Positions 9,364 to 35,600 of a DNA stretch of 64,000 nucleotides are shown here, in pieces. Source of the DNA: Thalia democratica (lineage: Eukaryota); NCBI GenBank assembly GCA_965202585.1, contig OZ241830.1, positions 21,204,001 to 21,268,000 on the forward strand, written 5' to 3'. The notes beneath the pieces are model-generated. The model was given only the letters and a program-made list of their open reading frames with translations. It was not told the origin of the DNA and did no database searches. Numbering within the stretch: position 1 is the stretch's first letter; each line of letters starts with the position of its first letter. The position numbers and the translations under genes are program-made.

Positions 9364-11848
9364 ATTAAATCCAACTGCATCTTCGTTACTTTTAATTACA
9401 AAAAAGTAAAAGGCAAACGTTTAAAATTCATTTAGTTTGTGTTTTTTTGTTATAATTTTTTTATGTCAAAGGTCTTAACAAGATATTTATCTATAAAAGT
9501 TCTCTTTGTTAAGAAAAGGTCACTAATTTACTTTAGATAGTTACCTTTACTGTATTGCCATTTAAAGATTTTTCAATATTAACTTTCAATTAAATATTTA
9601 TTAATTTTCGGTTTTATTTGTTAGACAAAATTTTCACGCTTTTAAAGTTAATTTGTCTACTAAACAATTTGTTATAACAATAGTTGTCTTTACCGTTTAA
9701 ATTCGTTATAACCAATATAAAATTTTGTTTAATTTTAATATTGTTTCATTTTTTATTAAATTACTTAAAATTTCTTAAGTTTTAACAAATGGACTTTTTT
9801 TATATGAAGATTATATTTAAAAAAAATAGTGGTAAATAATAACATTTTCATTTCTATGAATTAAAAAATATCAATTAACAATATAATATTGAACAGTAAA
9901 TAATAATTTATCTTACTTAATTACAATTTCTATGCAACTTTATATTTATAAAAAAAACATAAAACGTTTACAACTAATTAATTAAAAACATGCAGTTATA
10001 GCTTTTAACTTAAATTGTCGGAAATTAATTCAAGAAAATTTATCGCATGTAAATTAAAAGTTTTAGATTAGACAATTTTAAATTTAAAATTTAAACGTTA
10101 ACCAAAGGAGATTAAATTTTATAAAACCACTTAATTAATCACTTTCAAAACTGGCCTTAACCTATTAATAAAATTAATAATACGATTGTTTAAGTTGATA
10201 CAGTCTGGTACAAAAATTCATAAAAATAACTTATACTTGAATTTAAACTCTCTTGTCTGAAATACATACTTTTTTTAATGAACCTATGTAAAAATAGAAC
10301 ATTTTAATAATAAATTAAAAATGTTAAAAGTTTTTTTTTCGTAATATTTGTTATAATTATAGTGTCATTTTAAAAAAACTCATCTTATTTGTTTACTACT
10401 ACAATTCTAAAGTATATAATTTCCCTAGCTCAAGTCTAACTACTAACTTTTTTAGTTGCAATTTACAAGCTATTTGAACAAACTCAATGAATTGTAGAGT
10501 CGATATTTGTTTTATGTAAAGGACTTTAAAATTCATAGGAAAATGTTTAGCTTTTTAATTTGTACTATTAGTTAAAAACTAGCAAATTAAGTTGTTATCT
10601 AATTAAAAATAACTTATAACTTTAGTTACTTTAGACGAAAATATTTTTAGTTTTTTCAAAAATAGGTGGTTTATAAAAAAAACATTTAATAAAATAAAAT
10701 TCAATTAACTTAAACACTTTGAAAAAAAGATAATAGCAGCTAAAATTATTGTATAAATTAAAAAAAAATAACTAAAAAATATTTGTAACAAAAATTAGAT
10801 AGAAAACAATGAAATTGTTTTAAAACAGTTATTGATTTCTTACATATTCCTCATTTATATTTTTAGTAAATTAGTTTTCGTATTTTTATATTAAAACTTA
10901 TGTTCTGTTTTTAAAAATTACTAATAAAAGAAACGTCAATAAATTGTTTACTAAACGACAAATAAAAGCGCTCAAAATATTTGGTCCTAAGTCCTCTTGC
11001 ACGAACATACCTTAAAGTTATCGAGTCGCACACCAAAAATATCTTTTAACGTCTTTTCCACGTCGAAAACAATAATTTTTAAAATATAATTAATAGGTGA
11101 TAGTTTTTCTAAATTTAACAAAGGATTTTTATTTTATTATCACGTAGCAATTTTATATTATTCTTTATCTATATTTTATTTTTTATAAACACTGTTAGTT
11201 GAAATTTTTTGTATAATAAAATATTGTATGTAATACTATTTTGAAATTTAAGTAAAGCACAAAACACAAAACTTTTTACATCAAAAAAAAAAAGCTCAAA
11301 AATTTTATATTAATATTTTAATTTTCTTTTTGTAACATTTAATTAACATTTTCCATAAATTTACATTATTTGGTATTTGATTTTTGTAATTTTCTTTAGC
11401 TTAATAAATGTTATTAAAGATTCTTCTAATTTATAAACTTCTATAGTTTGATATTTTAATTTACTATGAGTTATCCTTAGTAAATATTTTTATTTAATTA
11501 TGATTGACTTTGGGAAATTAAATTAGAAGGAAGTTTAAATGGATTGAAACTGAGCGTAATTCTTTTTTTATTTTTTTTTAACTTCTTTTTTTAAAAGTAA
11601 CACCAACACTACTAACATTAATAAATTATAAACATTTTAAATACTTGTAAAGCTACTATGAATTTTTTTTTTAATGCTGTTTAATTATATTGTTTAACTT
11701 ATTTTTTTAACTATTTTATTAAATAAATTAAAATTTCTTTCTTTATAAATACTTACTCTTTTTTATACCAATAGTTGTTTAAACATATAACTTTATTCAA
11801 TATTACAAAATTCTATTAGAAATTAATTCTTATTTCGAAAAAAAATGA

Positions 11849-12366
11849 ACTCGGGTTGATTTTGATCGGGTGGATTTTGAACCGGGTGGATTTTGAACCG
11901 AGTGGAATTTGATCGGGTGGATTTTGACTCGGGTTGATTTTGATCGGGTTGATTTTAATCGGGTGGATTTTGAACCGGGTTGATTTTGATCGGGTGGATT
12001 TTGAACCGGGTTGATTTTGAACGGGTGGATTTTGACTCGGGTGGATTTTGACTCGGGTTGATTTTGATCGGGTTGATTTTAATCGGGTGGATTTTGAACC
12101 GGGTTGATTTTGAACGGGTGGATTTTGACTCGGGTGGATTTTGACTCGGATGGATTTTGATCGGGTGGATTTTGACCCGGGTGGATTTTGATCGGGTGGA
12201 TTTTGAACCGGGTAGATTTTGATCGGGTGGATTTTGACCCGGGTGGATTTTGATTGGGTGGATTTTGACTCGGGTGGATTTTGATCGGGTGGATTTTGAT
12301 CGGGTGGATTTTGATCGGGTGGATTTTGATCGCGGGTGGATTTTGATTGCGGGTGGATTTTGAACG
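11849..12366 (-). repeat. Reverse-complement array of the same minisatellite, roughly 33 units
   Basis: CGGGTGGATTTTGAT units; CCCGC-type variants at the outer end mirror the left array. Confidence 0.97.
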
Positions 12367-14544
12367 TGTCCCCTAAAAACAACCCAAAACTAATTGTGGT
12401 AAAAAATAAAATTACAAAATAGAATTCTTTTTAATGTTGAGTGGTCACATGACAATTAAAATTTCGACAAATCAGATTCTAAAAAATATTTTCAAGGGCC
12501 ACAACACAAAAAGTTATATATAATTGGAAAAATGCGTATATAAGTTTAACTAATACCTACAAATGCTTTTTTGTTGTTGAAGGTAAAAAATTACTAAAAA
12601 AGAATTTGGTAAAATACTAAAGTTACTATATTTAATACGTTTTTCAACCATATCCTCCGAAATACTTTAAATTTTTCAAATAGTATTTCTGAGTGTTAGC
12701 TAGACCTAAATACGCAAATTTATTTTTATTCGAGTATACTTTACTTTTTGATTTTTGGCCCGTTAAAAAGTATCTTAAGAAATAGAGTTGTCGGAATTAG
12801 AATAGTTCGAATTTGAATAGCTGGGCTCTGAAAACTTTTGTAGATGTTTTTTAATAAAAATTAAATTACGTAAAATAAATATTTTTTAGTTTAATTATCG
12901 ATTTAAATTTAAAATAGATTTTTTTTAAACTACACAAAGTTTTACATCTTTAAAGAACTAATTCTCACATGTTTCCTAATTTTTATCAGTAATCGAGAAA
13001 TGAAATTAATTTAACATATGTTGTTTGCTTTTTTAAGAAATGGCTTTTCAACTGGTCTTAGTAATTAATTTCGAAATAGAATTTAAAATAAATTACTATT
13101 CAATACTTTTTGAATTAACTCAAGCATCCATTTTCTTAATTTTAATTAAAAAAATCTAGAGTATTTAAAAACAATTTTTTTTGCTAAAATCAAAATTAGT
13201 GAAACTTGATGTATACAGCTGGTAATTTAAATTTATTTTAACAACCACTATACATACAAAGTTTGTTTTACACTTGGTCGGTACAATTGTGTGTTCACTA
13301 CAATTGGTAAAAAATAAAAGCTCATTCATAAGTTGTACATACACTAACCATAAAAGCAATAAAAAACATTTAAACAATTACAAAAAAAGCCATTATAGCC
13401 AAAGTAACCCTCGTAACAAATTTTTGCTGAAAAAACATTAGAGAGTTTTGTAATGGTGTATTTTATTGCATGCTTCCATTATATATTTTTAAATTTCAGA
13501 CCACAACGTATACTTTTTATATAAATCGTTTAGTACGGGAGTTTCAAAGACAGCTTCATATAATGCTAAACCAATTATTAGAACATTAAAAAAATTTGTT
13601 TAATCAAATCAAAAGCATTTTATTTAACTAGTTTGATTTTTGGCTCATTTTTAAAGTAATATAGATACATAAAAAAGACCGATGTTTATAGTCTTATGTG
13701 GCCAATTTTCTAAATTGTTCATTTTAGTAGCCTCACGTCGGTTGAAGTTTAAAATTTTTTTATTCTACCCTTTATAAGTACAAAACAATAAAAGTTCTAT
13801 AACAAATGATTGTTGTCTTAAACTAACACATTTAATGATTTTAGGCGTATATGCTGTACGTTATAAAAATACAATTCTCTACATTTTGTTGTATGTACTG
13901 TTAAATATTTAGTTTATATTTAATATTTAACAAGTTAAAACATTATAATTTAAATTTTAAAAATAAATTAAAATAAAAGTCAAAACTCTTTTTTTTGTTT
14001 GTGATTATTTAAAAGTAAAAAAAAATAGTTTATAAAATATTTTATATTTAACTAAAATCTCAATACCTTAAATTTATAAACGTCAACAAAAAATAAACAC
14101 ATACTATTTTTAAATAGTAATTATTTAAGTATTACTAAACAGTATTTATATTTATAGAATTTGTTACCTCTTCTTACACAGTTTTATAAATGAAAAAGTA
14201 TAAATTAAAACCTTATAAGTTTAGGTTTAATTTTGTTGAATAGTTTAATACATGTTTTGTGTTGATGTTTTAGTATTTAAAGAATATTAAAAAAAAAACT
14301 TTGTATTTTTTTAGCGACATTTACTTTTATAAATAAGCAACTAATTTTTGTATAAAAATTAATTTTTTTAAAATGTAATGCATCATTATTTAAGGCTTAT
14401 TAAAATAACAGAAACTAAAATTTAGTGTAAGTTGAATTGAAAAGAATTGTTTTCCTAAGCAGAAGCATTTTAGACAACTTCACATGAATATTTTATTAAA
14501 AAACATTGACAAATGTCACAGATACTTTTATAAGTTGTTTTTTT

Positions 14545-14745
14545 TACCTCGAACTCCAGCTAGTAAAACTTGAACATTAGGTTTATACAGTTGCTACCGT
14601 TAACGATTAGCGATGAGCAAGTTAATAAAAAGATTTATAAATAAAAGATTAGATAACAACGCTACATTCGCAAATAATCATTTTTTTAAGGCGAGGTGTT
14701 AAGGTAGTAATTTGATTGATAACTTGCTTGGTTTAATTTGTAATT
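14545..14745 (+). repeat. Conserved non-coding block, third copy of 51355-51550 / 42210-42420
   Basis: Shares ATTAGATAACAACGCTACATT and TTTAAGGCGAGGTGTTAAGGTAGTAATTTGATTGATAACT. Confidence 0.85.
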
Positions 14746-17669
14746 TATTATCTTGTTTACTTTTACTTGTCTTTAAAATTAAATAAGTTTAAGATATACA
14801 TTTTTACTAAAATCAATAAAGTGTTTAATAACAATGATGTGCTTTTTGTAAAAAGAATAAAGTCACACTTTAGTTGACATTTCTTTTCAAGTACTTAACG
14901 AGTTTAATTGTTCTAAAAGCCGACCAAAATCTGTAAAAAAAATCAAAAATAAGTATATTCACAATTTTTTTTACTCAAACGTATTGACTTTACATGTATC
15001 TTGTTTTTATAAAGTTCATTTAAAATTGTATTATTTTTATAGTTTAAATAAGAACAAAACTAAAATTTAGGATAAAATTATTTTAAAAAACATTAACCAC
15101 AGTATCTAAGTTCTTAAAACTGTAATAAATATTGTGAAAACACAGATCTTTCCCTTTTTTTAATAAATTCATTTATGTTTTAAATAAAAAAAACATTATA
15201 CCTTTTATGAAATTAAGAAACTTATAAAGTAAAATACGAAAATAATATTATGACTACTCAAAAAGTTTAACTCTTTTTTAAATATACAAAAAATTAGCGT
15301 AAACTTTTCTTTTCAAGGTTTTTCATTCATTAGCTATAACTACTTTGGTTTTAATTTTCACGCTTCAGAAAAATTGTCAACTCTCAATAAGTATTTTAAC
15401 AACCTAACATAATTACTGAAAAACAAACGAAAAAACATAAATTAGTCACTTTTTTGAAGTAGTTTTGTTGTCTAAATCGAGATACGATAAATTTACTCGC
15501 TAATATCGTTTTATCAGTTTTCAACAAAGGAGTTTAAGAACATGACAACTTTTATAATAGTAATGTTCAAGTGTATCTATTGTCTTTATATATTGTGAAT
15601 ATTAATTTAGAACCTTTATAGAAAATGAAAACTATGTGATTTTAAATTAATGTCTTATCTTTTAAAGTTTGTAAGTATTCGTGTATAACTATAGCTTTTG
15701 GTAAATGTATTAAAAAAATTATCAAATGTTGTATATATTAAATGGTTTAGATTGAAAATTAAAAAATAACTAAAATTTTGAACTATAATTAGATTCTAAT
15801 ACATATTATAGTAAGTTTCGTTAACAGGTAAATAGCTAGTTGTGTACGAAAAATCGGCTTTAATAACTGTACTCTTGTATATTTTTATGCAAAATGTTTT
15901 TGTTTTGAATGCATAAATGAAAAAAGATATATCTAGGTATAAACACAGGCATAAATAATGTTTCAAATACGCTTTTTTAACAACACATTTTTAACAACAG
16001 TCTATTGTAAATAAATCGAAATATATAATAAATACTCGGATGCTATTCTTAAATGTTTTGTTATTTTCACTATATATCTCCAGAAACATTACTGAAGAAT
16101 AATAAGGTATAAAAACAGTTTTTCACTAAAATAAAAAAATATTATTTAAATGCTAATACTCATCTTAAATAATCTTAATATATCTTAAATGCTAATAATA
16201 ATAAATAATAGTCAATAAAGAGACTAACAAAAGTAGAAAAAAAAAAGTCTTGTAAGAAACAAATAAATTCTACTTTTGTTAGTATCATTAATGACTGATT
16301 AGCATTATAGACAACAGTATAAGATACATATCATTGATAACTATGCTAGTCTCAGAAGTTGTAAATGATAAAACTTCATTTTTACTTGGATGTGATGAAG
16401 TTTTTAATTGATTCTTAGTTTATTAGAATATTTGTTTTTTAACCTAAATTTATGAAAAGTACTCAGATACTCAGTCTTTGAGGAGTACGGTATTATACAA
16501 TCTAAAAAACATTAATACACTAACAAAATTTAATCTGTACTAAAATTAGTCTGTTAATTTTTACTAAATAAAACATATATATGGTGACTTTGTGACATTT
16601 TTTTGATCAACTGTTATTTACAGTTATTAGTGCAAACGTATTTTTAATTCTAGAAAGTATCTATAGGTAGAAATAATATTTCTGTTTTATCAATTTAGTT
16701 ACACTGAAATTATTGAGTCATTTTATAAGACGTTTAGTAGTTATAATAAAGAAAATGCATAAAGAACAACTAGGTTGTAAGCTTTTTAGAAATAAAAATT
16801 TAAGAGAAAATAAACTTGAGTTTTTAAAAGTTTTCTGTCAACTCAAAACAATAAACTACTAAATTTGAATAGTTCATTTTAGATAAAACTAGAAATTTTT
16901 AAGTATGTTAAATACTTTTTCTTGTTTAACTAAAATTTTAACCTTAAGATTCATAATCATTATAATGTTAATTTAATTTAGGTTTCATTTTCATGATACA
17001 ACATGTAGTAATACTATTTTTTTAGGTTTTCAACAATAACATGAACTTGCTTTATTTATCGAAATTTTGAAGGGTATCACTAATTACTTTATAAGGCTTG
17101 TTCTTTTCTAACTATAACTTTTTATAACTAGCTTTTATGAAGTTTAAATGAAGTCTTTATGAATTTTAAAACTTAATGCAGTTTTATTTAAAAACAAGTA
17201 AACTAAGAAAAATAAACAAAAAGTAGACAGTATCGTTGAAATAAACTTTATTTTGATGTATAACTCTTGTTAAAATAAAAAAAATATTTTAAATATACAA
17301 TAGATTAGTTTAAAGTGATCGAAGTCACAATGCAATAGACACAAGCTAAATTTAAATAGCTAATTAGAAACAAACTTACAAACTTTTGTAAAAGTTTTAA
17401 TCTTTTTGAATTTAGTAGTTAATTAGTTTTTAAATTTTTATTAGTGATAATGGCTGTAGTAAATGTTTTTGTACTCAGTTTGCATGAACTCTTTATTATT
17501 AGGAAATATTTGTAGAAATTTAAAACGATTATATTTTTTTTATATGTATATGCTTTATAGTTTAAGCTAGTTTAATTTTTACGTTTTTCTTTAAAGTTTT
17601 TTTTAAATCTCTAACTAAGTTTAATCAGTTGATACTTTTGTATAACTGTGTAAGTAAAGAAGGAAATTA

Positions 17670-17865
17670 GGTTTAAGAAAACGAGCTTAACGTCTGCACA
17701 AAAGGAAACCTCTTTTTTAACATTAGGTCATAAATTAGCATAAACTTTTCCTTTCAAACTTTTATTATTCTTTGGCGAAACCTTTATTGATTTTATTCAA
17801 AACGCTTGAGAAAAATTGTCAACACTTCATGAATATTTTAATAACCAAGCATAATTGTCTAAATA
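17670..17865 (+). repeat. Conserved non-coding block, copy of 57355-57560 / 35680-35885; older copy at 15290-15420
   Basis: Shares AAACTTTTCCTTTCAAACTTTTATTATTCTTTGGCGAAACCTTTATTGATTT. Confidence 0.85.
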
Positions 17866-18806
17866 AACAAGTATTTTAAAACAGATATTTCAAACTGTTG
17901 CCATAAAGTAATTTAATTTGTAATATATCCATTATCAAATGTAACGTACTATATCACTTTGTTGAATAATATAGCAAAGTTATTCAAATTCAGATGCTTT
18001 TTGATACATAGTTTTAAAAGTATGCAGAAAAGGTATAACGTTTAGTTTAGTTTTAAATTAAAAAATATTCAACTTATTTTCAATAGTTAGTCTGTCTACA
18101 GCTTGATTAGTTGATTCCGCTTCTTATATTTATAATTTAATACAAAATTAAGTACTTTTATGCTTTCCTAAAATAAAAATTTAGATGTTACGTTGAAGTG
18201 TTACACGCTTTGAATATTGTTATGATCAGCAGTTTTTTAAGACTAGAAAAAAATACTACACACTCATTGTTCATGGTTTAAACTTAAACTTTAACTAAGC
18301 ATGAACAACTTTTAAGATAATACTTTCAAAACAATTTTATTGATCGTTTAAAACTGTTCAACAATGGTTTTTAGAACTATTCATTGCAAAAGGATATATT
18401 TAAATGGGTTTCAGAGCTTCCAACTTTATTTTGGAAAAAGTTCAAAAGTCATTAATAATTAGGATTCTATTTTGCAGTCAAAGAATTTTTTGTTCGATTT
18501 GAAAATAGCTACTCAACAATAATGCACGCAAAAAAATAAAACAGTAAGTTTTTAGAAGTGGATTAAAGAAAAACAATAAAGTTATTTTATAAATAAGAAA
18601 TCTCAATTGCTAAACAAACTGCATGTAAAACTTGATTCATTAAAAAATAAAAATATAAAAACTATATTTCTTGCAACTAAACTGTTATTACATCAGCGGA
18701 TGTAATTTCAAATGTCATTTTGTGTCAAAAAAAAAAACTATCCATAATATTTAAATAAGGCCAAGACAGTATTTTATTTTTCGTTTAATTGCAGCAACTT
18801 AATTGC

Positions 18807-20850: not shown

Positions 20851-21854
20851 TAATATCTAAAACCTGTCATTGGTTATTTGTATAGAAAGTATTATTTTAA
20901 CAGAAGTTTCAAGAAAATTTTGAATTTTCGCTACATTAATGTAGTGGTCAAGTTGTTAAAATATCATAGTAAGTTTCTAATAAGCTATAAGAATCAAAAC
21001 TTTAAAAAATATTGTATATGTGTTGACTTTGAAACATTCAACTCAACTTCCAGTTGCTTTGTAGTTTGAAGTGATACGGTTTGTTTCTTGAAAATTTATT
21101 TTAAACAAAAAATAAGCGTAATTAAACTTTATTTATTACATTAAACATTTTTGAAGTAAAATAGTACTTAAAAGTCTAAAATAAATGCATAGCTACTGTT
21201 TAAATACATTGAATAGCATTTTATAATGGAAATCTTAAGCACCTGAGTAAAAAGTCAAACTTTAAAACATTAATTCTTTATGACATCACAACCGAATTTC
21301 AAATTTAAATATATTTCAGCTCATGTCAGCTCAGCTTATAAAAAATCAAAACACTACAAAACAAATAGATAGCCAATTTAATTAAAAATTTGGAAACCAC
21401 ACCACAATAAATGCAAAAAGCGGGTTTCTTACATAAATTAATTTCTTATTAAAAAGCTATAAAGGTCTTTTTTTGATAAAAAGTTGGCACAATTTCAGAA
21501 ACTTTGATGAAACTTTTTAAACTTAAACATGCAAAAAAGGAACTTCTAAAGTTTTAAAATATATCATACATTGTTACATTACTTTAAAGATGATGAAAGA
21601 AAAAATTGTGATATTAATTTATGTTCATCAAAAACTGAAACATGGTTTTACAGTAATTATGGATTAACAACAACAAAAATAAGCAACAACTTAAAATACA
21701 AACTAGTTTTGTTGGTTGAAAAAAACACTTTCACACAGATTTATAATACATAATACAAAGTAACAAATCTTAAAAACGATTCGTTATACTAACAAAAAAT
21801 AGTTTTACAAGCTGTATACTTCATTATCACCTTAGTACTGTTAACTAAATTTAT

Positions 21855-22058
21855 CTATAAACAGTGGTTCAGCTGCGCGTTGACCAGTGAGAAGTAGCTT
21901 CCCTTCAGTTCCAGCAACTTTTCGTGACTTCCGCTTTCCACTACCACCCCGTTCTCAATCACCATTATGACGTCACTGTTGCGAATGGTGGACAACCGGT
22001 GTGCGATGACGATGCACGTCCTTCCCTCCGTTGCCCTGTCGATGGCCTCTTGCACGAT
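21855..22058 (-). pseudogene. Orphan duplicate of ABCB terminal exon, open frame ([12 protein letters not shown]...NAQLNHCL*)
   Basis: CTCAAACAG acceptor retained; 9 nt differences in 195 coding nt vs 5228-5422 (7 synonymous, 2 replacements) plus TGA>TGT stop loss; no intact upstream ABCB exons on this strand. Functional status uncertain. Confidence 0.8.
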
Positions 22059-22730
22059 CTGTTTGAGTATATCATTATTGTTGTTGTGACATCTTTAATA
22101 GGTTTTGCTTACTTTTAGTGAGTTAGAATTATTTAAAAAAAATTAAAAACAAAGTATTAACGGGTAAACGACAAACTTTATTGACTAAAGTTTTGTAATA
22201 GTCAGTTAGAACATTTTGATTTTCTTAACGTTTGATACAACAAAAAAGAAATTGTAATTATTAAATGTAGCTTAAAACACTGTAAACTAATCAGTTTATT
22301 TAAATAATAATAAAAGTGTGAAGTAGCTAATCTACTTTTTACCAGGTTTCAGTAAGAAAAGTGCCGACTTTGTCAAAAACTGAAAAATCGTAAACTGCAC
22401 TGAATAATATCCTTTTTTTGCAGTTTACTAAAATTTTAGTATCTGACGAGATCAGAACTTTTTTATACTGAGACCTGGTAATAAATAGAGTACTTAGTAA
22501 TTAGTTTTTTTATTTATTTTTACAACAAGCAGTTTAAAAGTTTCAAAAACTATAAGAAGTTTTAAAGTAATGTTTTATACCAACTTTATTTAATAATAAT
22601 TAAACATTAAAACTTTATAAATTTAACATTAAAAAGAAGTGTTATATAAATAGATAAATTTCTTTCAACTTGATTCCTTATAAAAAATTGCATCTGATCA
22701 AAAAAAGTTTTTAAGTTAGTTCATGTTTAA

Positions 22731-22736
22731 TTTATT
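22731..22736 (-). terminator. Candidate poly(A) signal for the left protocadherin
   Basis: First AATAAA on the minus strand after the stop at 22989; low specificity in AT-rich DNA. Confidence 0.35.
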
Positions 22737-22791
22737 GATAAAAGCTATATAAAACAATAAAAAAGAACTATATATACAGTTTACAAATTAC

Positions 22792-22920
22792 CTTTTCACC
22801 TTCGGTATCCAGCACAGAGGGAGCGTCATTCAGAAACAGAGCTTTGGGATTTCTGAGAAGAGCCTTGCCGATTGCAATTCTCAGTTTCTAACCTCCTGAT
22901 GGCTGGGCACCTTTAGATCA
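22792..22920 (-). pseudogene. Decayed duplicate of ABCB signature/Walker B exon
   Basis: [41 protein letters not shown] then GTAATT donor; 25 differences in 129 nt, no indels; 5' part of exon missing. Confidence 0.9.
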
Positions 22921-22988
22921 ATTGGGATTGAAACGTTAATCAGATTAAAACTAAGTCCTTCTGTACTCCTCCATCTACTTCACACTAT

Positions 22989-23311
22989 TCACGTGCTAGT
23001 TTTTGGCGAAACCCTGTTGTCTTCGTAGCTCGACAGCTTAGATTTCATAGCCAGCGACAAGTAGTTCTGCTGGGAAAAACTTCCGCTCGACTTGGAAGAC
23101 TGCGGGAACGAAACCTCGCTCGGGTTGGACAACCTGCCGATCGAAGTTGAGTTTGTGACGTCATAGTTGAAACGAGGGTCGTAGTAGAAGTTGTTGGGTT
23201 TGTACACTTGGGGTCGCGACTCATCGTAAGGAAGGGTTTTCGGCTCGCTGCTCGATATTGACTCTTCTGGTAAGTGTTGGAGATGAATCGTGTTTCTATG
23301 AAGCTCGTTTG
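22989..23311 (-). CDS. Left protocadherin exon 18 (Ser-rich tail, stop)
   Basis: AACAG acceptor, phase 1, open to TGA; GC-rich like genuine coding sequence. Confidence 0.8.
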
Positions 23312-26300
23312 CTGTTATTTGTTTTTATTTATTTTAAAACTCTATAATAGTCCTTATTTCTTTTATTAAATCATAAATTAAAAAAAAATATTTTTGTTTT
23401 CAAATTTATTCGTTCAAATTTATTTCATCCCTTAAAACAAAGTTTTGAGTTTAATTTAACGAAATCATAGACTAAGGCTTTTGCTTTTTTTTTTTATTTA
23501 GTCAAGTGATTCCTATCAAAAAAAGCTGTGCACAGTAAATCGTAAAAAAAATTGCACACTAAGTTAACATTAGATTTCAATTATTAAAATTTATATTAAT
23601 CTCAATATTACTGGTCATATATAGTTTAACTAAAAACAAAAATATAGAATAATCCTTTTTAGACTTCTTTTTTTAACATGTTAATTTCTATGCACACTAT
23701 TTCGATTTTGAAAAATGTCTCTTCCAAAAAAAAAAAAAGTTTATTTTTAAGCTGCTTATCAAGTAAGTAAACAATTTTCGTACCACTTTTGTTTCCAGGT
23801 AACCAACAGTTATCACTATGTCCGTAAACATTACAATCTTCAGTGCATTGTGACGTAATAATACTTTTTTGAGTTTCTTCAAACTTCATGGGAGGACAAG
23901 ATGGGATTGGTTTGTATATGTGGCCTAAAAAAATGAGACAACTTTCAGTAAGATTGTCAATAAATTAAGCATAATATTTTTTTTAAATTGTATTGTATAA
24001 GTTGAACATACCGTTGTAAGGATTTGGACTTTTTATCAACAATTCATTGCAGCCGCTAAAGTTTAAGCAAGGGTTTCTGCTTAATGGGTTTGTGTTCTGT
24101 AAAATTATTAGAAATAATTTAAATTTTATTTTGCGTGGTTTTTTCTAACTATAAGAAATTTAGGGTATAAATCACTTATATTTTGTAAAGTATAGAAACA
24201 ATATAACACAGGCAGTTATTACTGAATACAAGTAGAAATATATATAGCATAAATTTATAAACTTAATAGCTGAAAGTTTTCATCGAAATAACTTTTAGGT
24301 TAAAAAATAATTGTTTGAAGAGTAGATGTGTTTAATTCGTGAGTTGATATCATTGAAAACTTTTATTAAACGAATATTAAATTTAAAAAAACGTTCACAT
24401 AAACTTAAATTTTCTTTTATAAACTTAAAGTTCTAAAAGAGTAGAAAAGCAATAAAAATGTTTCTGTGTCCTTCAACACATGTTCATGCAGTGAAACAAT
24501 TCTGAAAAAAAATAGAAATTTTTAAAACCTGGCTTGTAAAGTTCATTGGTGGTTGAATGTTGGTGTATAAATTCGATGTGTATTCATTATCACGTGACGT
24601 CATAAGTTTTTGTGACATCATATCTTTATTTTTCAAACTTTCTTTTTCTCTAAATAATCATTTTAAGTTTTAAAACAAACCAAAACTAGTTTAGTATCAA
24701 TAAAAAGTAACAAACCTTGGAAATGTTTCGGTTTTGTATGAGGAAATAGGTGACAATTGGTTTGATTCACTTATTTCCGTTTGTTGCATTATTTTTTCGT
24801 TATTGCAATTGTAAACATGAGTTGTTTCCTAAAAGTTTAATTAAAAAATTTTATAATATAATGACGCGTATAGTAACCTTTTTAACTTTATTGAAAAAAA
24901 TTAAATGTTTAAAATATGCATTAAGGAAATATAACTTTGTCATCTTAAGTAAGCTTAGGTATCGTTTTTTTTTGTCTTAAGTCTGAAAAGTAAAAGAATA
25001 TTTTTAAAACTTAATTAGAGTTAAAGGCATTTTACAACTAGTCAAACCTTCTTTCTTTGGTTTTTGATAACACAACCAATCATAAAAACAAGAACAAGTA
25101 CAATAAGCAGTATTACGATCACCAAAATTAAATTCATTGTGTAATCGCCAACTTTCACATTTGAAGTATTTGTGTTAGCGTGTTTTATATTAACGTTTAA
25201 AACTATTATTGCTTCTTCTAAGTGACCTTTAGTATCAGTACTTGATGCCTATAAGCATAAACCGTTATAATATTTTAAACAACGATTTAAGAAATTTTAT
25301 ATGCATATGGTGATACGTAATTCGTAACTATTTATTATTTATATTAAAGGTCAAATTACTTAATGATATGTTGATTGAAAACTATAAAAAGTTAACTAGT
25401 ATATTTCTAACCTTCACCACAAGCCTATGCATTCCAACGAAAGTGTCGAGATTATTTTTATTGTGATTTATTTTCAGTTCATTATTATTTATAATCACAA
25501 AACAAGGTGAAAGATCCGGTTTATCGTCCAAACTTAAAACTTCAAAAATTGTTCTTTTATTCCAAACTTTATTGACCTGTTTACAAAACATAATAAGTAA
25601 ACTCTTAATTAAATTTTTTCGAAAAACGTAAACAAACTGTTAGTGTTAAATTCTTTTTATTATTTACCAGTATAATTTTCCAAGTTAAACATAACAAATA
25701 TCTTTTTGACTATATCTATTTTTAAACTCATATTATTACAAAACAAAATTTATTATCTTATTATTATTATTGTTAGTAAACGTTTTAAAACCTCAAACGC
25801 AATTATGACTTGTTGACTATCTATTGACGTGTTTACAGTTGAGAAGTTTTGTGAAGGCGACTTAAACATCAGTTTGTTTTCAACATTTGTTTTGTTTATT
25901 GTAACTTTTACTATTGTGTTTGATTTTAACGGTTCTGGACTTCCAAAATCCGAGGCAGTAACATTTATCTGAAATTTTTTTTCAAAATATTAGTTAGTAT
26001 TGTTTATATTTTTCGCATTTTACATTAATGATTATTAATAATGTTTGAACTAAATAACTGTAGAATTGATAACAGGCAAAATTTTAATATCAAAAATGTT
26101 ACAATTCTTATAATACCTGCCTTCTAAAATCTTGTTAAAACTACTACAAAGTTAATGCATTTAAGAATGGAGTTGTTTCAAAATTCTCTTTGTAAGGTTT
26201 TATTAATGGATTAACTACAAAAAAAGCGCATTTGAGCTACGCAAGGTTGTTACAGAACTTTGCTCTGTAAAAGCTTTAAAATGTCATGACAAATTATAAT

Positions 26301-29300
26301 CCATTAATCATAATTTTCGTGAAAAACAAAGTTCTTTCGACATTCGAAAATATTTCGAGCTTGAACATAATTACGGAAAAAGTTTAGTGCGAATCTTTGT
26401 TTCTATGACAAAAAGCCTAGAGGCATCGAAATTTGAAGAAAACTGTATCTATTAAGTTACATTATTCAAATTGATAAAAAATAATAATATGTTAGCAAGT
26501 TTCGTTAAAAAAACGCTATTATACTTAAAAGTCAGTTAGATTTGCAAATTTCATACGTCAGTAATAAAAGCATTTTTTAATTTTTCTTTAAATTTTAGTT
26601 ACTAAAACTTTATTTTTTATTAATTTTTTATAAGTTCGGGTAAGGTGGATAAGAGATAAGGGTATAAATTTAAAAAAATAAAATCGAGCTTTGATAACAT
26701 TTTCTGGCTCAGCAAATATGCAAATCAGACAGACTTTTATGTAAGCTTTCCTTTAAAATGCTTATAGTAATAATACTACCAGGTTTTTCAACTAACCAAG
26801 TTTTAATATTTGATATAGTTCCAAGCTTATTAGGTTTGCTTAGTTTAAACAAAACCTATACTAATTCAGAAAACATAGAAATATAAAGTTGGCTTTGAAA
26901 ACGTAATTTACTCTAAAAATCAACTTACCATTAAATAATTTTCGTAATATTTATCAAGTTTTGTTCGTAATGATATTTTTCCTGTACTTTTGTTAATTTT
27001 AAAATATTTTTTTGACGTTTCATCAATATCGTAGTAAATAACTCCGTTTTTGGAGATTTCTACTTTTTGTGTGTCCTGTAATTTTTCAAAAAATAGTTCA
27101 AAAGTGTTCCAAAACTTTAGTTTAGCTTTAACTTATGATATTCTCAGTACTATTTGTTTTCAATAAACAACAAGCAGTTAAACAAGTTTAACTAATCGAT
27201 CACAGTCTACCTAAAATATTTATAAAGTTTATAAATAAATTTACGTCCTAAAATAACTTTTTTCAGTAGTTTCAAATTTTATTTAATATAGCAGGTTTTA
27301 TTTAATATAGCATAAAACACACACATACATGTAAATATTTATATATATAAACAAACAAAATCTTACATCATTAATAGAATACACCGGTTCATTTATCGCA
27401 TCGTAGTCTTTTGCATTGACACTTATAATTTTTTGTCCAACTGTAAAATTTTCATTGATAGTGGTTTGATATTCGTTTTTATCAAATATTGGAGAGTGTT
27501 CGTTTACGTCCAATACGTTTATTGTGTAGTTTTCTAGTGTACACCTGTAAAATATTCAAGTTTAAATATACCTTCAGTTTGAATTATAAATTATGTTTTT
27601 TATCGTTATTAAATACACTTGAACTAACAACGAAGGTACTCCATTATCGCAAGCTTGTATTTTTATTTTATAGCTATTTGCTGTTTCTCTATTTAGATTT
27701 TTCTTTAACACAAGTAGGCTTGTATCTTGATTGTACTCGAAGTATTTTGATTTTTCGTTTGTTTCTGCATGTTTTAAACATTTATAAACTTTTATAATTT
27801 CAATGGTTTTTAAAAATATTATCAACTTTGGTGTTGTAGCTATTGATTATTAAATCGACTAAAATCTTTTAGGTACTGTAAATGTACTCCTAAGTATATA
27901 TTTAAACTAAAATGTATGCTTAGAAATAAATAAGTATTTTAGGGTATTTGTGAATAAACAAACCTTTATCAAATATTTTTATATTTGTCATGGAATTTTG
28001 ACCATTATCTGCGTCAGTAGTAGTTATATACGCTATGACGTCTCCTAATAAACTATCTTCTTTTATAAATCCTGTTTTGTTAATTTAGTTTTTTAAATAA
28101 TTTTATAGAACACTTACTTGTTTTAAGTAGTTATATTAAAAGTCCTTTATTTAGTATTAAGTTTTCAAATTTTATCTTTGAAAATTATATGCTGCAAAAT
28201 CTGTAACTAAAGCTAGTCTAATATTGTTTTGATAGCAAACTTGCTTATTTATTTTGTCAAGAACATTCCAAATTGGAAAACTCAGGTGCTAATAAAAATT
28301 ATAAGTTGTAATATGAGTACTCAATTTAGTATATAAAAGCTTTATAATAAAACTAATTAGATGTTAGTATATAGGTATGGTCTTAAAATACTTATTTGTT
28401 ATGACTTTTCGCTGTCTTCAATTATTTACATACAAAAACACTAAAAAACCTTAATTGTTTTTAAAATAAATACAAGTTACAAAGTAAAACTTAACAATTT
28501 ATTTATTATCATCTACTAACGAAATAAGTTTTGAAAAAATAAATAAAGTAGATTATAAAAATAGTTAGATACATTCTAAAACTAAATAAACAACAAAGCT
28601 TATTATTTTTAATGACCAAAATCGTTAATTAAGTAAGCTCTAATCAACTTTGTTAATAAACCAGTTTTATTTAGATTAAAAAAAAAATTTTTTTCATTTG
28701 CAAATTGTTTACTGCACATGTTAATTTGCACAATTTAATACTGAATAAATTTCGTATGCTGTCATCCAAAAACACAAATAAAAATAAAAGTGTTTTGACA
28801 GAAAAGTTTGAAAAGTATACGGTTCAATAAGTAGCATTTTAGATTTTTCAAACAAATGCACTTATTTTCGTATCAATCTTTTCTACAATGTTTACTGCGC
28901 ATAAAAGCTTTTAAAACACTGTTACTTGATATTGTAAGGCGCTTAAAATATCTGTACAAAGTTCAAGTTGCGTCTATTGCCAGTTTACTGCATAATGTTT
29001 ATAAACACTAAAAAAAATTGTAAATAAAAAAGGTTTTTAATTTTGTCTACTGTGGAGCTTTAAAGGTTATAAAGTTTAGAAACTTATTAGTTTCAGACTA
29101 TATTATATAAACTAAGACATTTTTTCCGTAAACTTATTCAAAAATAGGTAGATAAACCATTAAAAAAAACATTAAAAACTATTTGAAATATTTGTTATTT
29201 ATAGAAGTGTTTAATATTGTTTAGTACAACATTTTTAATTATAAACTCACCTGTGTTTCTATCAAAACTATCAGAAGTTGTAAAGAAATCAACATCTAGA

Positions 29301-32124
29301 ACAGGTTTGTGATCATTTACATCTTCGATATTCAGAATCACTTTTGTTGTAGCATATTGGGGTTTTTTACCGTTATCACTTGCTTCAATTATAAATGTTA
29401 TACTGAAAAATATAAGTGAGAATTAGTTTTGTAGAGATAATCTATAAAGAACTTAAAAAAACAAAAAATATACAAAGGTTTTTTTGTACATACCCGTTAT
29501 GGAGTTGCCAGTTCAGTTTCTTTTTAATGATTACGTCACCACTTTCCCTATCAACCGATAACAAATCAGGATATGTAGATTTATCAACTCTAGGTGGCGC
29601 ATCCAATTGACCCACAATTTTGTAGTGAACCTGATTGTTGTCAAGACTACCATCTTTGTCCTTAGCAACCACAGTGGTAACCAACGACCCAATCGGGGAA
29701 TCTTCTGGAACTGAGATAACAGAGTTTTCAACATCAAACTCGGGTCTGCAGTCGTTTACGTCACTGATGTGAATTGTGACGTATGTTGATGACGTCATCG
29801 GAGAATTACCCTTATCAGTTGCAGTTAATTTCAATTGAATTATCGACTTGGTTTCGTGATCTGGTAGGAATAAACTGGTAAACTAAATTTACACAGTCAC
29901 TAATTTAAAACAGTCAAAGCAACTTAAAGAAGTAGTCTTATGAATACTTTTTTTAAAAAATAATTAATTAATGAAAATTGTAAAGAGCCTTACAATATTT
30001 TGTAAAAAAATAATAAAATTTGGAAGTTAAACCGTATTCCATTTAATTTTAAATATAATTTTAATAAGTATTTATTTTTTGTAAGATTTTAGTATAATCC
30101 TTAACAAACTAATAGTTTCACACAGGGTTTAAAATTTACTTTAAAAATTTAGCATTTATAATTTGTGAAGTTATACCAACCCAGTTTTCTTTTAGTTCTT
30201 AGTTCAAGATTTTGTCTTTTTGACAACAAAAATTGAGCATTAGCTGCATAAGGATCGTAAATTTCAAAATAGTCATTAATCTGCAGTTTGTATTCAACTA
30301 CGGCGTTCTTGTCTGAAAAATTTAAAACAACTATAAAAAAAATGGTATTTCTAAATAAAACTAAGCTTCTGAAGATACATTTTATATATATATAAAACTA
30401 AGTTATACAGTTTACAGTAAGTTTCTGTCAACTTTGTAACTGTAAAATAATCTTAAATTGTTTTTTCGTTAGCCATACGATTATACTATAGATGTCGAAA
30501 TGTTTATGTGTACTATAAACTTATCACAAAGTACCTACTTATAGTAGAAACTATAGAGTAGTTTTTTGATAACAAATTTAAAAGCGTGTAAACGAGTTTT
30601 TGTCAAAAATAGAAGTCAAAAGTGACTTTAACTGTCGGATGTTTTCAGTTGTCGTAAATTTTGACAAGAAAATCAAAAAATTCATTGATAAGAAAAATAT
30701 TTTGTTGTAAAAATAACACGTTTAAACCATATGGTGAACCATTGTTACTTGATCTGACATTTATAAAAGGTTTTAGATTTATCTTATCAAAAGTCTTGAC
30801 TATTTCAAGGATAGATTTACACGTGTTTTAAAATTGAATTAAAAAAGACACAGTTTTATATACTTTTTCTAACAATCTTTTATAAAATTAAGCTTTTGTT
30901 TAGTAAGTATAACTTAAACTCAAAAACACCTACAAAACCCAACCTAAAAACTTTTAGTTAAATATAAAATAACCGTTATATGAAAGCATTGTTAAGCATT
31001 TAAAATCAATAATGTTTTGTTTATACGATTTTTTTATAAGTGGAAGCGAGTTTGTTTCTTTTGTTAAATACTTTTACTTTTATTATTTTAGTCGCATAAA
31101 ATAAATAAACTTAACTTAAAAAAAATAACTTCAAAGCCTTTATACTCTGAAGCAATTTATTATCATTAATTATATATAGATATTTTTTTAAATATAACTT
31201 ACTACAGTCTGCATCGGATGCTTTATATTGATTAATGTTAAACAGAGATCCAACTTTTGAGTCTTCAGGAATTTCGACTGGAGTTAGATTAGATGCAAAC
31301 ACGGGGAAATTATTGTTGACGTCATCAACTTTAACTCTGACAATTTTGACGGCGCGAATGTTGTCGCTGTTCAAGTTTTTTGACAAACCTACCTGTTATG
31401 TGGTCAGAACGGTTTATTTGAACGTTTTTATTGTGTTTATACTTACGTTGATACTTTTTTTTTCAGAAGTCTTGTAATACCTTAGAATTTCAATTTATTC
31501 CAAAATATTTGATATTCAAGTTTGAACTGGTTATCATATATTTTATTTTAATTCAAGTTTATATGAGAAAATTAATTTACTTATTTTTTTATATCACTTA
31601 ACAAAAAAAATAAATACTAATTTTTTTGTTTAGTAGTAATAAATAAAAGATACTAACTAGTACATTAAGAATGCAATAACAGTTATCAGCACAGTCTGAT
31701 GTGAAATTGATGTTTCTATTTATTCTTATGTTTCCAGAATAAATATCAATTAAAAACAAGTCTTTAACTTCAATCTGATTATCTTGTTTTTGATTGTAAA
31801 CTTTTTTGATTGAGTAAAACCAAGTTTCATTATTTTTTGAGCTCGTAGCTGGCATGTACTGTAACTTTTCTGCTATTGTTGAGCCTAAAGTTTTAAAAAG
31901 CTCATTTGAACTATATAAAAAATCATAGAACTTACTTGATAAACAATATTTTGTCATAAGTATTTAAACGGTTTGTAAATAATATTTATTTTGAAGTTTA
32001 TATAATAAAACAAACCTATTTTGATATCTTCTTTTATGATGACATCAGGTATTTCAACAGATCTTGTTTGTTTACAAAAACTACTTGAAAACACAAACAA
32101 AAATAAAACTAAAGCTTTTATCAT
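22989..32124 (-). CDS. Protocadherin (delta-like, CM2 motif), complete: complement join(32016..32124,31658..31884,31203..31392,30181..30312,29494..29860,29251..29402,27964..28071,27629..27764,27367..27544,26929..27075,25792..25968,25412..25576,25048..25248,24716..24828,24529..24649,24012..24096,23784..23924,22989..23311); 3072 nt, 1023 aa
   Basis: Signal peptide MIKALVLFLFVFSS; EC1 Cys-X5-Cys; linkers DVNNNFP, DVNDCRP, DVNDHKP, DVNEHSP; TM LILVIVILLIVLVLVFMIGCVI; CTEDCNVYGHSDNCWLP matches the CM2 consensus CTxECxxxGHSDxCWMP. All 17 introns GT-AG and phase-compatible with no internal stop. Confidence 0.9.
23784..23924 (-). CDS. Left protocadherin exon 17 (CM2 motif)
   Basis: CTEDCNVYGHSDNCWLP. 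Confidence 0.92.
24012..24096 (-). CDS. Left protocadherin exon 16 (cytoplasmic)
   Basis: NTNPLSRNPC...PNPYN; TTACAG acceptor, GTATGT donor. Confidence 0.75.
24529..24649 (-). CDS. Left protocadherin exon 15 (cytoplasmic)
   Basis: EKESLKN...QPPMNFTSQ; phase fit. Confidence 0.7.
24716..24828 (-). CDS. Left protocadherin exon 14 (cytoplasmic)
   Basis: ETTHVYNCN...KTETFP; AG/GT ends and phase fit. Confidence 0.75.
25048..25248 (-). CDS. Left protocadherin exon 13 (TM)
   Basis: Hydrophobic helix followed by KNQRKK. Confidence 0.9.
25412..25576 (-). CDS. Left protocadherin exon 12 (EC6, degenerate)
   Basis: Open frame with phase 0 at both ends; GMHRLVVK strand. Confidence 0.78.
25792..25968 (-). 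CDS. Left protocadherin exon 11 (EC5/EC6)
   Basis: INVTASDFGSPEPL...VKVTI; donor less certain. Confidence 0.82.
26929..27075 (-). CDS. Left protocadherin exon 10 (EC5)
   Basis: YFKINKSTGKISLRTKLD, then GTAAGT. Confidence 0.88.
27367..27544 (-). CDS. Left protocadherin exon 9 (EC4/EC5)
   Basis: VLDVNEHSPIF...INENFTVG...AKDYD. Confidence 0.92.
27629..27764 (-). CDS. Left protocadherin exon 8 (EC4)
   Basis: LLVLKKNLNRET...IQACDNGVPS; acceptor CATGCAG chosen by phase. Confidence 0.85.
27964..28071 (-). CDS. Left protocadherin exon 7 (EC4)
   Basis: FIKEDSLLGDVIAYITTTDADNGQNS. Confidence 0.88.
29251..29402 (-). CDS. Left protocadherin exon 6 (EC3/EC4)
   Basis: IEASDNGKKPQ...IEDVNDHKP. Confidence 0.92.
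29494..29860 (-). CDS. Left protocadherin exon 5 (EC2/EC3)
   Basis: DHET...ATDKGNSP...ISDVNDCRPEF...VPEDSPIGS. Confidence 0.95.
30181..30312 (-). CDS. Left protocadherin exon 4 (EC2)
   Basis: KNAVVEYKLQINDYFEI...LELRTKRKL. Confidence 0.88.
31203..31392 (-). CDS. Left protocadherin exon 3 (EC1/EC2)
   Basis: VKVDDVNNNFPVF...EIPEDSKVGS...ASDADC. Confidence 0.92.
31658..31884 (-). CDS. Left protocadherin exon 2 (EC1)
   Basis: STIAEK...LFLIDIYSGNIRI...CADNCYCILNVL; 227 nt as in paralog. Confidence 0.88.
32016..32124 (-). CDS. Left protocadherin exon 1 (signal peptide)
   Basis: MIKALVLFLFVFSSSFCKQTRSVEIPDVIIKEDIKI; 109 nt as in paralog. Confidence 0.88.
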
Positions 32125-32384
32125 TTTAAAATCTGAATAATGTAAAAATGTTTAAAAGTACGAATAAATATTTTTAAAACAAATTTCACAGTTGTATAAA
32201 TAACTTAATCATGTTTTATAAATAAATTTGACTCTAACATAGTAAATATGTGCAACCAGTATTTAATTAAAGGATTTGAAAAACAGTAATTATCAATTAA
32301 GTAGTTCGCTTAAAGACTAGATATAAAAAGTAGCGTACTTAAAGTAACATGGTGATAGATTTAAAATAGTTTCAATCAATTTAT

Positions 32385-32645
32385 CACTGAATCAAAGTAC
32401 TTTGCAAAGCTCAAACGCGTGTCATTTCACTTTTTTCAATACTTACATCAAACACACAAAAGTTTATAAGCCAAGTCAGGTGGGTATAAAGACAAAAGTA
32501 TTACAACTTATTACAACGTCACTCATAAACGTAATTATCTTCACTTTTGGCGCACTTTTAACATGTTCTTTGGTAATTGCACAAAATACACGTCTATTAC
32601 ACAAAATGACATTTGAAATTACATCCGCTGCAACTTTGAAGCCGG
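32385..32645 (-). promoter_or_regulatory. Conserved upstream block (P-block) 5' of left protocadherin ATG exon
   Basis: Highly similar to 59830-60105; contains GCGGATGT (ETS-like) and ATGAGTGACGT (CRE/AP-1-like). The regulatory role is inferred; it could be a repeat. Confidence 0.45.
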
Positions 32646-35600
32646 TTTGGTTGCATTAAAAACCAATTTTGTCAGGAGTTATTATGTGTGTAATCGAGTT
32701 TTAAATGTTTTTTTTTATTTAAAAAAAGTTTTGCTCATTTAAAATAACCTTAGTTTTTTATTCTTTGTTTCACTTTTGTTGTTTTACTTATTTTTTCTCT
32801 CCACATGCACTATTGTTTACTAGCTTTCTTTTAATCGTGGAAAAGAATTTGCTCAGAGTGTGGAAAAGAATATTAATTATGTATGATTGTTGAATGCTTT
32901 TCTAAAAAATAAGTTTTGGAAACGATAATATTATATTCAGAAACGTTAAAAACCATATTTTAAACATAAGTAGTAGTTTTGAAATATTTTAGTACAATTA
33001 ACACTAATTTAAAAAGCATTTAGTTTAAAATTAACTCGTAACAAGTTTAAACACAAAAGTTTTAGCTATAAATATCAAAAACAGACCTTTATCATGACTA
33101 TTTATAGTAAATTTACAAACGTTTAGTCAACATAGAACTTTGTGATATGGTTAAGACTTTAAGTAAAGAGTATAGTTATTTTGAGTTTTTTAAATGTATT
33201 GAAATTTGTATTTATACTCAAAGCATCATCTACTAGGTACAGTTAATGTAATTATAAATAAGATAAATGTACTGAACACTTAAAAATATATTTTTTTTTT
33301 CAAAATAGTTTTAACTAAACAGAATATAAAGTTTAAACAATACTTTAAAATTAAAATTAAAAAATAAAAATTCTGCATTCTTATATTAAAGTATCTTAAT
33401 TTAAATACCTAAATAAAAAAAAGGTTTGTTTTATTTAACACTGTTACAGTTAAAGATGAAACTTTAAAGTATAAATCATATGATAGTCATAAAACAAAAG
33501 CAATTTGTTTTTAAAGTCTAAACTATCACAAGACAATAGTAGTAAAACAAAAAATAGCTAAAACAAAATTAAATTAAGTTTAAGCACAACACACACCTTA
33601 TTGTGTTTAGCGTAAAAACAAATTGAAAATTTATTTATGAGAGAAAAGATAATTTTGAGAAAAAATACAAACCGGTTTTTTAATGAGAGAAAAACTTTGA
33701 GTTTGTATTTTGAGTTTTGTTGCAGCAAATTCTATGTAAAGATATTTTTCAAACGCATTTAAAATAATTTTAAAGTTTATAAAGTTTTTTATTGTTTCTA
33801 TATTTCAAAACAGTAAAAAAAAATTCGAAAATTGCTGAACAGTTTGGAAATAAATTTTATAAAAATCATATAACTGGTCTTACAATTTAAAACAGTTTAA
33901 AGTCACAGTACCTTCTCATTATAGAATAATAAAGCTAATAATTTTTTTTAATAATTGACATAAAAATATGAAGTTGTTTAAACAATTTAAAAATTACTTT
34001 AGCTTTCTAAAAAGGCTTTGAAAAAAATCATAAACGAATATTTTTATATGTTTGGGCTTTAAGAAAACAAATAAAGAGATCTAAACTAAAATTTATATTT
34101 ATAAAATATTTAAACACTAATGAATTTATTCTTTCAAACTATTTTTCAAGAATTCCCAAATCAAATTGTTTGTGTTGTTTTTTGATTTTGAAACTTAACT
34201 AAAATTTATATTTTACCATAAATTCAATGGTTTTAAGTAAAAAATTTGGTTTTAACTAAAAGTTTTTATAAAAAGCATTCGGTAAGGATTTTAAATTTTC
34301 ATAGCTATTACAACTACAAGATTGTTTAAATTTTCAATAGTTAAGTTTAAATTAGAATAAAGCTACGTTAAAATTCATCTCAACTTTAAGCTCACTTAGT
34401 ACTATTAGCTACATTTTTACTTAAGCAATGTTTACTTTGAAAATTAACTATAAGAAAAAACAAAGCTTAATACAGCTTTTATTATCACTATTCTTGTTGT
34501 TATATTGATTTTAAAATTTAACTAAAATTTAAACTTTACTATAAATTCAATCTTGATATTAAAATTTAAATTGTTTAGTTTTTAAGTAAAAATTTTCAGT
34601 AAACATTTGTTTTTATTTTATTGTTTAAATGCTATCTTCCATGCCTGTTACATATCTTTATAGATTTATCTAAGCACTGACGAGGTATTTGACCGAAACT
34701 TAGTTTGTAAAATAGTTCTTGAAAGAATAAATTAATTAACGATTATTTGATTGAAAACTTATTGAAAACTACGTAATATTTGCACTAAACTCAAAATTGT
34801 TTAAAAACTAAACATTTAACTTTAAATCTTTTTTTTTTAATAATTTTTAAATCTTTATAAAGTAGTTCATCTACATCTCTAGCTTTAATTAAATTTTAAA
34901 ACATATAACTCTACTAAAGTTTTAATGTATTTAAAGTACTATAAATTAATTTTCGAACATTATTCTTTTTGTTTAAATAAGTATGTTTTAAGAATATTTA
35001 CAGTTTACCAATTTATCTTGTTGATTTATTAATCTGGTTGACAAGTTTACGCAAAAAAAAAACATACACATAACAAAGTTTATGTTTTTATTTATACATA
35101 CTAAAACATCTATGTATTAATAGACTTTATCATTATTTTTGTCAATTTTAATTTATTTGAACTGCATTTTAGATAAAGGTGATCTTAAGTAAAACTATAT
35201 CGTTGCTTCATATTAAAATTTGTTGACTTTCCCACAAAAACAAAAACCAAATCCTTGTACTTGTATATTTTCGCTATAAAATATCACTATAAAACTTATT
35301 TGTTTTGTTTGTCTTTCTCAAGAAACAATAAAAAACACTTCTTTTAAACGATATTAAACGTATATTTACTTCATAAAAAATATATCTAGTTTTAGTTTTT
35401 AAACTAGTATTACAAATATACACTAAATAAAACTTAAAACTTTTTTAAGAATTTCCCATACAATACTAAAAGTTGAATCGTATGCATTATACTTTATTTA
35501 AGATATATAATGTTACTTAAAACTTGTCTACTTTTAATGGATTTTCCCACCTAGACGAGTAAAACGCTATATTTTAATCGATACCACGAAGATAAGGTTA

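Follow-up and report, generated by a model that had tools for sequence, protein, structure and literature searches.

The locus and its genes

The window (the whole stretch of DNA that was analysed, 64,000 nucleotides) is AT-rich eukaryotic DNA, from a genome of about 25% GC. It carries the 3' end of a transporter gene, called here the parent, and, on the opposite strand, a protocadherin gene, called L. The features of these two genes are:

388-5425, plus strand: last five exons of the parent ABCB-type transporter gene (P-glycoprotein-type), intact
3039-3185, plus strand: penultimate exon of the parent, with intact LSGGQ and Walker B motifs (Pfam ABC_tran, E 5e-13)
5228-5425, plus strand: terminal exon of the parent, with a TGA stop; joined to 3185 in an RNA contig
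about 32150 to 22989, minus strand: protocadherin gene L
25248-25048, minus strand: transmembrane exon of L, containing a hydrophobic stretch
23311-22992, minus strand: last coding exon of L (cytoplasmic tail), an open frame seen in the RNA joint 23311>23784 and in the paralog alignment
22991-22989, minus strand: TGA stop codon of L, at a position common to the paralogs R and C3 and to an environmental ortholog

Two exons of the parent (1778-2092 and 3039-3185) match the Pfam family ABC_tran. L is a member of the cadherin superfamily, with cadherin repeats (Pfam Cadherin matches exon 29445-29882, E 9e-13) and a transmembrane segment. Its joints 25574>25790, 24828>25047 and 23311>23784 are supported by spliced RNA contigs. 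An earlier sequence-only reading of the window had located the minus-strand stop of L here and had the exons that end at 25048 and 24529 close in phase 0. Both statements hold, the second in agreement with the sequence and with RNA joints that link 25047/25048 to 24828. Relative to its paralogs R, C3 and C4, L has a 12-nt in-frame deletion in the last exon.

Self-comparison reveals two inverted duplications. In the first, the 3' end of the parent and the sequence downstream of it (3058 to about 14250) recur inverted at 22919 to about 18918. The second is a large palindrome centred near 46755, with L in its left arm and the paralog R in its right arm. A further 120 kb past the window end were fetched, giving a total searched span of 184 kb, in which positions beyond the window are stated as window equivalents. 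Identity between the palindrome arms (28496-46654 versus 46856-64000 and on to about 71047) varies along their length: the protocadherin body and the 5 kb upstream of it are at about 88%, the parts near the centre and in the ABCB tail at 69-75%, which points to homogenisation of the gene region at a later time. The spacer that separates the parent arm from the L arm (13425-18731) recurs past the ABCB tail of R (window-equivalent 72662-77826) in an orientation opposite to that of a simple mirror copy, which would fit a flip produced by recombination of the inverted arms. Two short tandem-repeat arrays (7235-7851 and 11846-12369), inverted to each other and about 4 kb apart, are present in the parent arm only. 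The arrays contain long open frames (QNPPDQNPP/KSTRSKSTR type) and look like the repeat-array ends of an inserted element.

The ABCB-derived sequence behind L

The L stop is followed by a short remnant of protocadherin sequence and then by an incomplete second copy of the ABCB 3' end (ABCB'):

22988-22931, minus strand: remnant of the native protocadherin 3' flank, homologous to C3 and to the environmental contig L013
22930-22920: rearrangement junction between protocadherin flank and ABCB fragment, about 11 nt of unassignable origin in a four-way alignment
22919-22792, minus strand: copy of the ABCB penultimate exon, truncated at its 5' end (signature and Walker B region), 128 nt corresponding to parent 3058-3185
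22791-22059, minus strand: ABCB' intron, 733 nt, with GT at 22791-22790 and AG at 22060-22059
22058-21855, minus strand: ABCB' terminal exon, 67 open codons (22058-21858) and a TAG at 21857-21855, comprising D-loop, H-loop and C-terminus
21854-21331, minus strand: ABCB' 3' flank, homologous to parent flank 5435-5950 (K2P 0.35)

A decayed ABCB exon had been described about 70 nt past the L stop on the same strand, and it is found there: similarity to the parent begins at 22919 and runs without indels to 22792. The fragment alone is 81% identical to the parent over 128 nt (tblastn E 3e-17), and with the start of the intron included blastn gives 80% over 157 nt (E about 1e-34). Its designation as a dead ABCB exon is right as to ABCB origin and needs correction as to extent, the piece being no whole exon: it is without the acceptor and the first 19 nt of parent exon 3039-3185. 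Alignments link parent 3058-3214 with L 22919-22766 and parent 5217-5950 with L 22069-21331, so that the homology spans intron and flank and not the exons alone.

In the parent frame the L fragment has one in-frame TAG, at the Q of LSGGQ. The ABC signature is spoiled in both palindrome arms, L reading PSGG and then the stop and R reading LSVSQ; neither has an intact LSGGQ. Walker B (hhhhDE, with the catalytic Glu) is lost in L, where the parental LLLDEA has become LFLNDA. No Walker A, Q-loop or transmembrane domains of ABCB' were detected near L or R by tblastn with all parent open frames across the 184 kb. In the terminal exon of L the parent TGA stop is a TGT, which adds two codons, and the frame contains IAHRLSTI. 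Of a functional ABCB/MDR-type nucleotide-binding domain, ABCB' thus still has the H-loop and the C-terminal region.

Both splice sites of the ABCB' intron had been called intact, rightly so. The donor AAG/GTAATT after 22792 matches the parent exactly through +5, and the acceptor AG at 22060-22059 closes a stretch of 11 nt before the exon that equals that of the parent. A junction made from this donor would lie 197 nt past the L stop, the distance calculated before. The retained sites were inherited from the parent, whose identical sites work, and the acceptor is not conserved in R. The motif AAAAG/GTAAT around the donor is unchanged in L, R and L013; we discarded this conservation as evidence of use, since it is not significant and stems from the post-hoc choice of an A-rich 11-nt window.

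The first AATAAA past the L stop (22736-22731) lies beyond the fragment, as had been noted, and inside the ABCB' intron. A scan for 12 common poly(A) hexamer variants from the L stop to 22800 found none, and the last bases up to the donor likewise contain none. As no canonical poly(A) signal precedes the fragment, an L transcript would have to run into it. The remnant flank of L has ATTAAC (22937-22932) where C3 has ATTAAA. Past the ABCB stop the first AATAAA comes at 723 nt in the parent and at 717 nt in L.

Paralogs, an environmental ortholog and the order of events

R is collinear with L down to 21333/71047. Its last exon (window-equivalent 69067-69420) is followed by the ABCB fragment from 69460 and by the terminal exon from 70356, which begins 936 nt past the R stop. 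In L as in R, the match to the parent sets in at parent 3058, which gives them one breakpoint in common. The 3' end of the right paralog, a comparison that the sequence-only reading had itself named as able to change its inferred order, decides against that order of events, in which the left protocadherin was the derived copy: R has the same ABCB tail and breakpoint, and so has the environmental ortholog of L. The companion idea, that L had landed inside ABCB', fails as well, tblastn with every parent open frame finding no further ABCB' exons in 184 kb. Since this span holds no other ABCB piece beyond the tails of L and R, we regard ABCB' as a 5'-truncated duplicate and not as a split gene.

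Pairwise distances in the fragment are 19% between parent and L, 26% between parent and R and 30.5% between L and R, values that agree with a branch common to L and R after their split from the parent. Shared breakpoint and distances together argue for one truncation and fusion, later copied along with the protocadherin. The fusion would be older than the L/R duplication, because R carries the same tail and breakpoint.

The paralog C3 (plus strand, stop near window-equivalent 102727) has no ABCB tail. It matches L through the stop and 58 nt more, to 22931, and its flank past the equivalent of 22931 is unrelated to anything nearby. Given that the similarity to C3 ends at 22931 and that to the parent starts at 22919, the junction is placed within 22930-22920; the native protocadherin 3' flank of L is cut off 58-70 nt past the stop. 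Two further similarities were set aside. The resemblance of the C3 flank, past the junction, to the flank of a distant environmental paralog is weak (p about 0.05) and does not prove that flank to be ancestral. That of the L sequence after the donor to the 3' flank of this same paralog (score 37, empirical p about 0.002) is probably due to chance, the sequence being AT-rich and the similarity absent from R and C3. The last intron of C3 (L004, window-equivalent about 100880-101956) has about 1 kb of extra sequence and, in the paralog alignment, a 38-nt GC-rich perfect hairpin insert flanked by repeated AGAGAC that looks like a small foldback element.

The protein of the L last exon retrieved the ENA contig L013, which is genomic since it contains introns. 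L013 shares the private 12-nt deletion of L, the stop, the junction, the ABCB fragment and the donor; its fragment is open and has a 9-nt deletion. It is an environmental ortholog of L, and the fusion is therefore older than a species split as well. A protein prediction, P0121, was considered as a protocadherin-ABCB read-through product and rejected: the gene caller read TGA as Trp, and the ABCB part is out of frame (L013:977-1525). P0121 is an artefact of annotating AT-rich eukaryotic contigs from metagenomes.

The tree of the last intron is ((L,R),C3), with an L-R K2P of 0.14 there versus 0.35-0.5 in the ABCB tail. The gene bodies of L and R were probably homogenised later, leaving the intron tree an unclean record of duplication order. 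The argument for a single origin rests on the shared breakpoint, not on this tree.

Divergence of the fragment and likeness of the terminal exon

Between L and L013, K2P is 0.11 in coding exons, 0.29-0.57 in introns, 0.39 in the protocadherin UTR stub and 0.31 in the ABCB fragment. Divergence of the fragment thus falls in the intron range, which indicates no detectable constraint and a drift at about the neutral rate. The stop codons picked up in the fragment differ between L and R. In R a G-to-A change has also created an AATAAA in the fragment, 8 nt before the old donor (L001:5579, window-equivalent 69579), and the R mRNA may end inside the relic.

The terminal exon copies of the parent, L and R are 95-96% identical. 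In 195 nt there are 9 differences between parent and L, 6 between parent and R and 7 between L and R, with dS of 0.17, 0.12 and 0.09, respectively; K2P in the adjoining intron and 3' flank is 0.35-0.63. All three copies agree fully over a central tract of 80 nt, and identity drops steeply at either edge of the exon. The L-R changes (3 nonsynonymous, 4 synonymous) show no significant departure from the neutral expectation. This near-identity is most likely the result of gene conversion among the three copies, rather than of selection on a product. Conversion is favoured over selection at the protein level alone because synonymous sites are 2-5 times too similar, and over use of the exon because the R exon is still 96% identical despite its destroyed acceptor (CAG changed to CAA, with a 2-nt insertion). 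Some selection on the terminal exon is compatible with the 7 L-R differences. The three copies (21858-22058, 5228-5425 and L001:6356-6550) have a GC content of 54% and a GC3 of about 0.7.

The closest ABCB terminal exons in databases are 75-76% identical to the L-type exon. A protein-database search with it gave 76% as the best match and no gene call or transcript ORF from this organism, and two exact-pattern scans of JGI metagenome contigs gave no match.

RNA coverage of the tail and alternative readings

The RNA evidence consists of assembled contigs (X1 and X2) from one marine metatranscriptome sample, of a relative 5-8% diverged; contigs of this kind cannot show absence. X3 resembles DNA of the same organism. 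X5 comes from a relative with about 7% divergence and extends over the whole tail, the boundary between intron and acceptor included.

One RNA contig enters the terminal exon (21910-22060, depth 142/464). Its next 16 bases are those of the end of the parent penultimate exon, and it has an A where L has a G. Another runs into the parent 3' UTR. Both are parental ABCB mRNA. Among the contigs of this related organism none has the joint 22792>22058, and the only splice into this type of exon is that of the parent. RNA contigs of the protocadherin last exon carry the 12-nt segment missing in L and are hence of the R or C3 type; none of the contigs of this one sample clearly spans the L stop or documents an L 3' UTR. 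Contig depth in this environmental sample is 0 over 22156-22891, which includes the ABCB' intron and nearly all of the fragment. It is also 0 in two sampled protocadherin intron bins, 23444-23627 and 24180-24363. X2 does have two contigs in the region below the terminal exon. One lies directly below it on the L-specific flank (21686-21851, depth 10.6, similar to the 4-35 of the protocadherin exons), the other at 21205-21302 (depth 2.4), past the aligned flank, where no other copy aligns. This coverage of the L flank matches an ABCB-type 3' UTR; assembled contigs give no strand, no junction and no account of DNA carry-over, and the probability that it stems from spliced transcription is low.

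Coverage below the terminal exon with none over fragment or intron is what would be seen if the ABCB' terminal exon and its flank were transcribed independently of the protocadherin, in sense or antisense direction and probably into a non-coding RNA. The stretch 22919-22792 would then be untranscribed intergenic DNA, and L would use a non-canonical end signal no more than about 60 nt past its stop. C3 offers a precedent for the latter in an ATTAAA 54 nt past its stop (window-equivalent 102782), just before the junction, which suggests a very short ancestral 3' UTR. We consider this reading unlikely. The hexamer is mutated in all three tailed genes (ATTAAC in L and R, GTTAAA in L013), the reading has to postulate a promoter and a transcript start, and the coverage, 2-10x in one environmental sample, could include DNA.

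The same contigs could be taken to mean that the tail is a working part of L. L would either read through the fragment and splice 22792>22058, which creates a 3'-UTR intron and adds the ABCB 3' UTR, whose poly(A) site is near 21137, or join a phase-0 exon ending at 25048 or 24529 to 22058, which produces a cadherin-transmembrane protein with a 67-residue ABC tail. The donor and acceptor of L are identical to the parent sites used in RNA, no poly(A) hexamer lies ahead of the donor, the phases match, the terminal exon is open and conserved, and the RNA library has contigs on the L-specific flank (21205-21851), with a depth of 0 in the intron. Against these points, the contigs contain no such junction and carry no strand information, and depth over the partial exon is 0, leaving the route through the 22792 donor unseen. 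R is without the acceptor and its fragment contains an AATAAA, so that the paralogs do not have the splice in common; the fragment evolves neutrally, and gene conversion is the better explanation of the similarity at synonymous sites. A working tail is accordingly a rather unlikely reading. Its narrower version, in which L and not R uses the orphan ABCB exon as an alternative last exon (behind a 3'-UTR intron or in an in-frame cadherin-transmembrane-ABC-tail chimera), we hold to be quite improbable. If true, it would account for the intact acceptor, the open frame and the RNA coverage on the L-specific ABCB' flank, and the locus would be a young case of exon shuffling, midway between a relic and a new gene part.

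The earlier history, in which a derived L inserted into ABCB' and took its 3' end while R kept the original one, is very improbable, provided that the assembly right of the window is correct: its sole point is that L lies next to the parent ABCB, in a tail-to-tail inverted duplication with it, against which stand the same tail and breakpoint in R, the tail of the L ortholog in another organism and the absence, on the other side of L, of any upstream ABCB' exons.

A probable relic of partial gene duplication

The explanation we prefer sees in the ABCB-like stretch behind L the relic of a partial gene duplication, whose terminal exon was kept alike most likely by conversion; this we regard as the probable history of the locus. 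The 3' end of the neighbouring ABCB gene would have been copied and joined in inverted orientation to a protocadherin copy. The copied piece would begin in the penultimate exon, 19 nt past its start, and take in the terminal exon together with 500 nt or more of the 3' flank. The join, 58-70 nt past the protocadherin stop, would have displaced the rest of the native 3' flank. Such a fusion would have occurred once, in the common ancestor of L and R, and the block of protocadherin and ABCB tail would then have been duplicated as the two arms of the palindrome centred near 46755. Afterwards the partial exon would have drifted about neutrally, with the terminal exon held near-identical to the parent. 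By its truncation, disabling mutations and neutral divergence ABCB' is an unprocessed pseudogene fragment, with the exception of the terminal exon.

The sequence-only reading had the 3' UTR of L built from a dead ABCB exon. The ABCB origin stands, as do the loss of the native flank and the want of a canonical poly(A) signal ahead of the fragment; use as UTR is plausible from the position alone. L transcripts that do not end within about 60 nt of the stop would include the fragment in their 3' UTR. The suggested trigger of nonsense-mediated decay and the in-frame fusion are speculation.

The locus is a well-resolved case of what nested inverted duplications leave behind: a truncated copy of one gene, attached to the 3' end of a neighbouring one. 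It also illustrates that gene conversion can give one exon of such a relic the look of a living one. Annotation should not treat the ABCB' exons as a gene, and an open orphan exon alone is no evidence of function. The case would matter more only if transcripts were to prove splicing of the protocadherin into the ABCB terminal exon.

Comparison with known systems

In nonsense-mediated decay that depends on the exon junction complex (EJC), 3'-UTR introns act as triggers according to a rule of 50-55 nt. The 22792>22058 junction, if used, would lie 197 nt past the L stop; no spliced read of it was found, and the EJC rule may not apply here.

Partial and chimeric gene duplicates that recruit neighbouring sequence were reportedly catalogued in C. 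elegans by Katju and Lynch, and Drosophila Sdic is a gene made of parts of two adjacent genes. The locus resembles these chimeric duplicates in having its breakpoint inside a gene, a truncated copy fused to another gene, and formerly coding sequence that is now non-coding in a neighbour. It differs from them in that the ABCB' piece sits past a stop codon and decays neutrally, and in being known from DNA, with no chimeric transcript seen.

The palindromes of the human Y chromosome undergo arm-to-arm gene conversion. As in that system, inverted copies have near-identical tracts bounded by diverged sequence, and synonymous sites are homogenised. Unlike in the Y palindromes, the tract here is a single exon of 200 nt, the rest of the arms is 20-40% diverged, and conversion is deduced from these patterns.

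ABCB' shares several features with unprocessed pseudogene fragments: truncation, an intron with its splice sites still in place, an in-frame stop, the loss of catalytic motifs and a partial exon that diverges at the neutral rate. It departs from them in its terminal exon, which is open and, at 95-96% identity to the parent, stands far above its surroundings.
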